Shown here: piece by piece, positions 9,117 to 10,286 of the stretch
How the letters are laid out: every line of letters starts with the position of its first letter
Position numbering within the stretch: position 1 is the first letter of the stretch
Source of the DNA: Scyliorhinus canicula
Taxonomy: Eukaryota
Direction of reading: 5' to 3'
Assembly (NCBI RefSeq): GCF_902713615.1
Contig: NC_052171.1
Location: 22,852,324-22,916,323, forward strand
DNA length: 64,000 bases
Translations under genes and position numbers: made by a program
Notes under the pieces: generated by a model
The model's input: only the letters and a program-made list of their open reading frames with translations
Told to the model about the DNA's origin: nothing
Databases searched by the model: none

Positions 9117-9485
9117 AATCGAACCTGGGACCCTGGAGCTGTGAAGCATTTATGCTAACCACCATGCTACCCTGCTGTATCTTTGGAAGAATTATTTATT
9201 CATTTAAATGTATTGCGATAGCAGGTCAAGTGGGGCTGAAATTGACCGTGCACCAGCTCAGGGGGACATGGTATCCGGGGGACAGAGTTGAGATGACTTT
9301 GGTGAAGCACAGCTTGTACACGGTTCTGGAGTAGCCACAGGGGTGGTGACTGATTCTGAGAGCGGTCAAATTTGAGATGGCTCCTCCATAATCCTTCACG
9401 TTGACAAGAGTCGCAGGCTGTTGCGAGGTGGGAAAAGTTGAGCTGCTCCTCGCGTTTTTTGTCTTGGGATGGCCTGCACGGTGAT

Positions 9486-9566
9486 AGATTGTGGCCGTGT
9501 TGCCTCTCGCTGGGCGAAGGCCCTCGTCGGGCCTTCGCCCAGCGAGAGGCAACACGGCCACAATCT
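9486..9566 (+). other. perfect 38-bp inverted repeat with a 5-nt loop
   Basis: 9486-9523 is the exact reverse complement of 9529-9566; loop TCGTC. Confidence 0.95.
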
Positions 9567-10286
9567 TCACCGGCAGCCATCCTGGGCAGGAGCTCTCAGC
9601 CACTGGGGGAGCTAACTGAGGAGGTTCCTTGCAATGATGTGACCTGTCAACGGTTATTCGTGCACTCTGACTTGTCTCCCTTGCTCAAAGGTAGTCGTGG
9701 TCACAACATCCCTTAGATACTCTGGTGTCCGCTCCTTTTCCCAGATGAGTGTTGTGAGCTTGTGCAGTCGAGATGGTTCATGACAACATGCTGCCTTGTC
9801 TGTGATCCACGTTCTGATCATGGGCTTGGGGTGGCAAGGAGGAGGCATCTGCAGCAGATGGAATTCCGGTTCTGAAACATGGAGCACATCAGGAGTACAG
9901 AAAATGCCATTCATCTTAAATCTGGAAAATAAGACAGTACCTGGTGTTTATTCTCCCGCCACCTGGTTTTTAACTGGAGTATCGGAGTTCACTTGGGGAG
10001 AGGGCGTGGTTATTCACATGAGAAGGCAGCGATTGGATGGAGAATTCCAGGTGATCTCACACCCTGTGCCAGCATTCCTCACCATCTGTGTCATCCCTGT
10101 CGGAATCTTTTATCTTTTAGATTCTCTGCCTTAAATCCACCGAGAGCGGATCTGAAACGGGTTGTTTCCAATGGATTTGCTTCAAGTTCACATGTTCTGT
10201 TTCTGTACTTTTCTCCCCAAAAATATTCATCCACGATCAGTAACTTTTGGAAATGTGGTCACAGTGGAAATGAAGGAGCACGTTTA

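Follow-up and report, generated by a model that had tools for sequence, protein, structure and literature searches.

In the reference assembly, the window analyzed here, a stretch of 64,000 nucleotides from Scyliorhinus canicula, contains a hairpin whose core has fully complementary arms. This raises the questions of how such a structure arose and whether it has any role in the cell.

Structure and copy number of the hairpin

A sequence-only reading had placed the core of the hairpin at positions 9486-9523 and 9529-9566, and the comparison of these two segments confirmed it: each arm measures 38 nt, the two are 100% complementary, and the loop TCGTC (9524-9528, 5 nt, plus strand) lies between them. 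As RNA, this perfect core (9486-9566; 38 + 5 + 38 nt) folds at -86.8 kcal/mol. Pairing had also been described as continuing outward through 9463-9484 and 9567-9586. A core-anchored alignment agreed with this first extension, adding 16 matches and three gaps of 1 nt without a single mismatch and giving arms that span 9467-9523 on the left and 9529-9582 on the right. Compared to random pairs drawn from the window, an extension of this kind has a P of about 0.006. Aligned over their full length, the arms agree at 54 positions and differ by three 1-nt gaps (bulges), with no substitution. The product is a 54-bp GC-rich hairpin, a palindrome capable of extruding as a cruciform.

Folding calculations were carried out with a piece of 140 nt containing the hairpin. 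As RNA it reaches -125 kcal/mol on the plus strand and -118.5 kcal/mol on the minus strand, and as DNA -75 kcal/mol; z values lie between -16 and -17 for the RNA as well as the DNA folds. In a scan of about 286 kb (the window plus about 222 kb from other loci of this genome) for perfect hairpins with arms of at least 20 nt and a loop of at most 20 nt, this hairpin was the sole one detected. It is present in one copy in the 4.2-Gb genome. The hairpin matches itself in inverted orientation over 116 nt at 91%, and a search with 9271-9900 returned only the self-match and the inverted self-match. The earlier statement that no TIR or TSD is visible and that the structure is not a MITE holds, in keeping with its single copy.

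The flanks do not extend the hairpin into a rod

The sequence-only reading further proposed a rod of about 530 nt, in which the core would be continued by the pairings 9399-9428/9627-9652, 9326-9351/9699-9725 and 9242-9260/9754-9770. None of these outer pairings could be reproduced, and the 530-nt rod falls with them. The whole span 9242-9770 does fold with a z of -10, and this value is due to the core. When the core was kept and the flanks were shuffled, each flank separately and with dinucleotides preserved, the native span folded at -268.5 compared to -261.6 ± 6.1 for the shuffled ones (z -1.1). Folded without the core, the flanks gave a z of -1.8. The number of pairs connecting the left with the right side was 93 in the native sequence versus 46 ± 21 in the shuffled ones, where the maximum was 112. 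Alignment of one flank against the other revealed no Watson-Crick similarity beyond the 18 nt adjoining the core. In addition, the outermost left segment of the proposed rod, 9242-9260, falls inside 9177-9270, where the end of a different dispersed repeat is located. This unrelated repeat end of about 90 nt has at least 40 copies with 77-92% identity, nearly all of which end at 9262-9270. The rod was rejected, since neither the fold with the core held constant nor the flank alignment exceeds chance.

The hairpin lies in a decayed LINE fragment

The minus-strand open reading frame 9654-9914 was used in a protein search of the genome and yielded about 50 weak matches, all of them at residues 48-82. 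The open frames at the loci behind these matches contain the Pfam domain RVT_1 (E 5e-13). Using these family frames in tblastn searches of the window, we detected a series of minus-strand matches arranged in the order of the reverse transcriptase: 9773-9678 (E 4e-9), 9688-9581, 9522-9493 and 9496-9305 (E 2.6e-7), and a further match at 9526-9278 (E 2e-5). A DNA profile generated from eight family copies found 9772-9343 on the minus strand with nhmmer (E 3.2e-14), which is its sole match in the 64-kb window. The reverse transcriptase homology surfaced only via the family copies of the same genome: Pfam searches with seven local open reading frames of the window gave no match, because the window's own frames are broken and too decayed.

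Identity of the host fragment to the family consensus is 63%, corresponding to a Jukes-Cantor (JC) distance of 0.51 (37% diverged). The family copies are 76-91% identical to their own consensus and only 56-62% identical to the host fragment. Judged by these homologies, the region from about 9278 to 9781 (minus strand), which is interrupted by stops and frameshifts and hosts the hairpin, is an old and long-dead reverse transcriptase fragment of a non-LTR retrotransposon (LINE). A second candidate LINE fragment at 9842-9997 on the plus strand (tblastn, E 0.003) was taken as a chance match; the DNA profile did not find it.

The right arm is the derived arm

The family copies allowed a comparison of the two arms with related sequence. 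In a MAFFT alignment of eight copies with the minus strand of the window, 9533-9580 has no counterpart in any of the relatives, and nhmmer places about 49 bases of the window in insert states. Depending on the aligner, the stretch found only in the window measures about 48-58 nt; the homologous stretch is 82-93 nt long in the relatives versus 146 nt in the window. When the left arm is read on the minus strand, it encodes GLRPARGNTATI, a decayed form of the reverse transcriptase motif GFRPSRGTMDMIF, and it matches the GFRPSRGTMDMIF of the family. From the left arm the alignment to the family runs on into SARQIQEKCREQ.

The extra bases form the exact reverse complement of the neighboring ancestral sequence that codes for the GFRPSRGTMDMIF motif of the reverse transcriptase, and as a result the peptide GLRPARGN can be read on both strands, at 9522-9493 on the minus strand and at 9527-9553 on the plus strand. 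Since the left arm (9467-9523, plus strand) aligns to all eight family copies and the extra bases are its reverse complement, the comparison shows a polarity in which the left arm is the template and ancestral LINE sequence, and the right arm (9529-9582, plus strand), absent from eight of eight related copies, a derived inverted copy of it. The ancestral state is here read from eight paralogous LINE copies and not from the orthologous site, a comparison that does not fix the exact switch points or the origin of the loop; on whether the loop is ancestral or new, the aligners disagree.

The same site folds at only -10 to -23 kcal/mol in the relatives, compared to -119 kcal/mol in the window. This bears on one of the origins put forward earlier, a cruciform perfected by template switching. 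The relatives fold weakly and lack the right arm, so there was no older cruciform to be perfected. With that correction, template switching is the one of the three earlier readings that the evidence supports, the hairpin having been created by an inverted duplication.

The duplication postdates the death of the LINE

Over 54 aligned nucleotides the arms carry no substitution, whereas the host fragment has diverged by 37% from the family consensus. Unsubstituted arms in so strongly diverged a host place the duplication long after the death of the LINE. The contrast shows an age gap, the hairpin being far younger than the element around it. Zero substitutions bound the divergence of the arms only loosely, to a few percent, and "young" is meant relative to the LINE and not as an absolute date.

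The same age gap bears on a rival origin, in which the reverse transcriptase of the LINE itself made the fold-back at insertion by snap-back self-priming of the cDNA, and the arms were subsequently kept identical by conversion. The position of the hairpin inside a retrotransposon fragment would fit such an event, and reverse transcriptases can self-prime on folded-back cDNA. However, the arms have no substitution although the host around them is 37% diverged and riddled with stops and frameshifts, and this origin would require tens of millions of years of perfect homogenization of a 54-bp palindrome, for which no process is established. Moreover, the fold-back is absent from the other family copies (eight compared), and neither a hammerhead nor another hallmark of Penelope elements is present. 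We consider this origin barely credible.

The arms differ at three places only, each time by a 1-nt indel within the outer 19 nt. Relative to the family, base 9485 is a derived addition to the left arm, and at the other two places the right arm has lost a base. Uniform decay after one clean event would not produce such a pattern. Possible sources are error-prone synthesis near the switch point, a second event by which the inner 38 bp were refreshed, or consensus errors left in the assembly; the last option is supported by nearby 1-nt indels between the reference and short reads (9292, 9340 and 9793).

Probable origin by a templated inverted duplication

We put at about 70% the probability that one templated inverted duplication in a dead LINE left the hairpin behind as its scar, and that it is probably inert. 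According to this proposal, a fragment of a non-LTR retrotransposon would first have come to lie on the minus strand and decayed. Long afterwards, about 54 nt of its reverse transcriptase region (now 9467-9523) would have been copied in reverse-complement orientation, and the copy (9529-9582) would have been set down at a distance of 5 nt, in place of roughly 10 nt of the ancestral sequence. Two routes could lead to this product. The first is a template-switch mutation, in which the nascent strand would fold back or jump to the opposite strand during replication, copy briefly and return; a short reverse-complement copy next to its template, after which colinear sequence resumes, is the hallmark of such mutations. 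In the second, a broken 3' end would snap back and prime its own extension before end joining, as in templated insertions of the polymerase theta type. Insertions templated by snap-back usually range from a few nucleotides up to a few tens, and at 54 nt the copy described here is long for polymerase theta end joining or SD-MMEJ; a further difference from that pathway is that no clear microhomology was identified at the junctions. The data do not separate template switch from snap-back, because the host is too diverged for clear microhomology to be recognizable at the junctions.

Template switching has been reported to create perfect hairpins in one event at sites without earlier similarity (PMC10710096; bioRxiv 10.1101/2021.04.15.439925). 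Among the events described are ones of 28 and 83 bases, and for the primate lineage the reported hairpins number more than 6,000 (PMC10710096; bioRxiv 10.1101/2021.04.15.439925). The hairpin resembles the template-switch mutations of Ripley's quasi-palindrome model and of Loytynoja and colleagues in several respects: neighboring sequence, in reverse complement, has taken the place of the original stretch, the stem is perfect, the loop is short and asymmetric, and the site was previously without a hairpin. Furthermore, the length of about 54 nt lies within the reported 28-83 bases, and the DNA concerned is non-coding and repeat-derived. It differs in that the ancestral state comes from paralogous LINE copies instead of an orthologous outgroup, that the event was strongly net-insertional (roughly +48 nt) and that the outer 19 nt contain three 1-nt indels.

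Snap-back templated insertion during polymerase theta end joining gives the same topology (PMC4912351, PMC5068794, PMC5728401). Shared with this pathway and with SD-MMEJ are the inverted copy beside the junction, the loss of a few ancestral bases at the join and possibly synthesis of low fidelity (PMC4912351, PMC5068794, PMC5728401).

With MITEs, foldback elements and palindromic Penelope insertions the hairpin has in common an inverted-repeat architecture tied to a transposable element. Unlike these, it is single copy and has no TIRs at its ends, no TSD and no hammerhead ribozyme, and the palindrome arose by rearrangement within a dead LINE instead of being an element of its own.

Short-read coverage of the palindrome

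The palindrome is known from the reference assembly alone, and 350 nt (9117-9466) separate it from an assembly gap of 100 N (9017-9116). Three low-depth short-read runs from three studies behave like DNA data. Contigs from these runs cover 9153-9447 and 9605/9621-10310, and none covers 9448-9604; in the bin 9486-9569 the depth is zero in all three. In the best run (X1), holes elsewhere make up only about 2% of the unique sequence. The flanks agree well with other samples: over 9153-9447 the contig of another individual shows no substitutions and two indels, and over 9621-10310 a short-read contig shows three substitutions.

These data have to be weighed against an artefact, in which the inverted copy would stem from a chimeric long read or from a consensus error near a contig end. 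The vicinity of the gap would fit this explanation, as would the fact that all three short-read data sets reach 9447 and 9605/9621 without giving a contig in between. The nearby reference indels of 1 nt are in line with it as well: such indels are the typical consensus error of long reads, and the arms, too, differ by nothing else. However, chimeras that result from missed adapters or strand jumps give inverted arms of read length without a return, and not a copy of 54 nt after which colinear sequence resumes. Contigs support the flanks well, and animals without the insertion should give contigs that cross the site with a skip of about 55 nt, of which there is none among the contigs listed. 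Breaks around the palindrome in all three runs are also what a k=31 graph and Illumina sequencing produce at a real perfect hairpin: such a palindrome breaks the graph and depresses coverage, which fits holes centered on the hairpin. On this indirect evidence we regard an artefact as unlikely. In each of the three independent data sets, short-read contigs appear to break at the GC-rich 54-bp palindrome; sites of this kind are blind spots of resequencing, and long reads are needed to verify them.

Two further observations concern the comparison with short reads. Between the reference and the short-read contigs of other samples, indels of 1-2 nt were seen at 9292, 9340, 9793, 11173 and 11563; the difference at 9793 recurs in each of the three DNA-like runs. 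For every two substitutions there is about one indel in this part of the assembly, a ratio that hints at leftover consensus errors from long reads. A contig from run X5 that covers 9605-10289 has 22 additional letters at its left end that could not be placed, and its alignment stops inside a GGGGG run (9605-9609). The unplaced end (9583-9605) could reflect a difference in homopolymer length or a real difference at the edge of the right arm.

Small RNA families, editing and transcription

The sequence-only reading had suggested that the hairpin might be a substrate of Drosha and Dicer (a young miRNA or a hairpin endo-siRNA) or of ADAR. Rfam searches, RNA runs and the shape of stem and loop all failed to lend support to these suggestions, which are unsupported rather than refuted. 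At the gathering score, a search of the whole window found no Rfam family at the hairpin. With the threshold lowered to E <= 10 over 9117-10000, only generic sub-threshold hairpin matches were obtained, to several miRNA models and on both strands, the best being MIR918 with 56.9 bits compared to a threshold of 268. Matches of this type are what any perfect hairpin gives and show nothing but the hairpin shape. A hammerhead ribozyme was found neither at the gathering score nor at E <= 10 over 9117-10000.

None of the runs on record as RNA contains the stretch according to a 31-mer index, a route by which small-RNA runs are not findable. In the oligo-dT RNA run X22, of which about a third was read, no reads fell on the unique sequence of 9234-10241 and 10578-11649. 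Runs that were guessed to be RNA show a flat depth of 4-7 everywhere, like DNA of low coverage. Pfam searches with ten long open reading frames of the window identified only another LINE (47316-49067) and no host gene. The hairpin lies in repeat-rich, apparently untranscribed DNA, and nothing points to a role.

Drosha prefers pri-miRNAs with a stem of about 35 bp and an unstructured apical loop of at least 10 nt (PMC10710096). Like a canonical animal pri-miRNA, the sequence forms a stable stem-loop on either strand. It differs from one in its 54-bp stem, which exceeds the preferred length, in its 5-nt loop, which falls short of it, and in having neither a family match nor evidence of expression.

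These results also bear on the possibility of a newborn locus for small RNA or dsRNA, in which a hairpin born by template switching is transcribed and becomes a substrate of Dicer (as an endo-siRNA or young miRNA) or of ADAR. In favor of it, either strand would give a very stable 54-bp duplex, and it is documented that new miRNA genes can arise from hairpins made by template switching (PMC10710096). Against it stand the missing Rfam family at the gathering score, with the best match at 57 of 268 bits, and the expression data: no run recorded as RNA contains the stretch, X22 has no reads on it and the supposed RNA runs look like DNA. The departure of stem and loop from the Drosha preference (PMC10710096) and the setting of minisatellites and dead repeats, with no gene detected, likewise argue against it. 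We judge a locus of this kind to be very improbable. There is an even slimmer chance that a recently born template-switch palindrome is transcribed in some tissue, for example in the germline or embryo, and diced into small RNAs. If true, this would be a proto-miRNA or endo-siRNA locus of a cartilaginous fish caught as it was being born, and the dead LINE around it would still tell how it arose.

On the best-supported assessment, the hairpin is an ordinary case of a mutation class already known, and it shows no sign of function; the process behind it has been described, with thousands of such hairpins reported in primates. Its small value lies in teaching: outside mammals it offers a clean case in which the event hit a recognizable reverse transcriptase motif, so that the original arm can be told from the copied one without an outgroup genome.

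Sequence surroundings

To the left of the gap, a minisatellite with a 38-nt unit occupies 4679-9016 (about 115 units) and runs into the gap. Its unit contains the heptamers CACTGTG and CACAGTG, the letters of the heptamer of the V(D)J recombination signal, a likeness that is probably a coincidence. Between the gap and the dispersed repeat end described above lies the tRNA-like head of a high-copy SINE (9117-9177, minus strand), which is cut off by the gap and has hundreds of candidates at 93-100% in the genome. On the right side of the hairpin, a high-copy SINE is located at about 10286-10520. In the oligo-dT RNA run it is covered by hundreds of reads per base on both strands, which evidently come from many genomic copies embedded in transcripts. 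The LINE at 47316-49067 (minus strand) is better preserved than the fragment hosting the hairpin, and its open frames contain Exo_endo_phos_2 (1.6e-10) and RVT_1 (5e-19).

Five additional minisatellite arrays were found at 2475-4431, 27369-28459, 28997-29499, 35676-36507 and 38305-38939, some of them strongly G-rich or C-rich, and the GC skew near minisatellite arrays reaches +0.41 and -0.52. The window looks like a satellite-rich region that is possibly subtelomeric or otherwise unstable. Replication forks are prone to stall in minisatellite-rich surroundings, and this setting may conceivably be linked to the hairpin. An 18-nt tandem repeat at 20043-23670 (about 206 units of CCAAGGGTCACTGGGTAG) is open in several frames on both strands, and these open frames account for the "ORFs" of 400-535 amino acids listed at 20043-23670.
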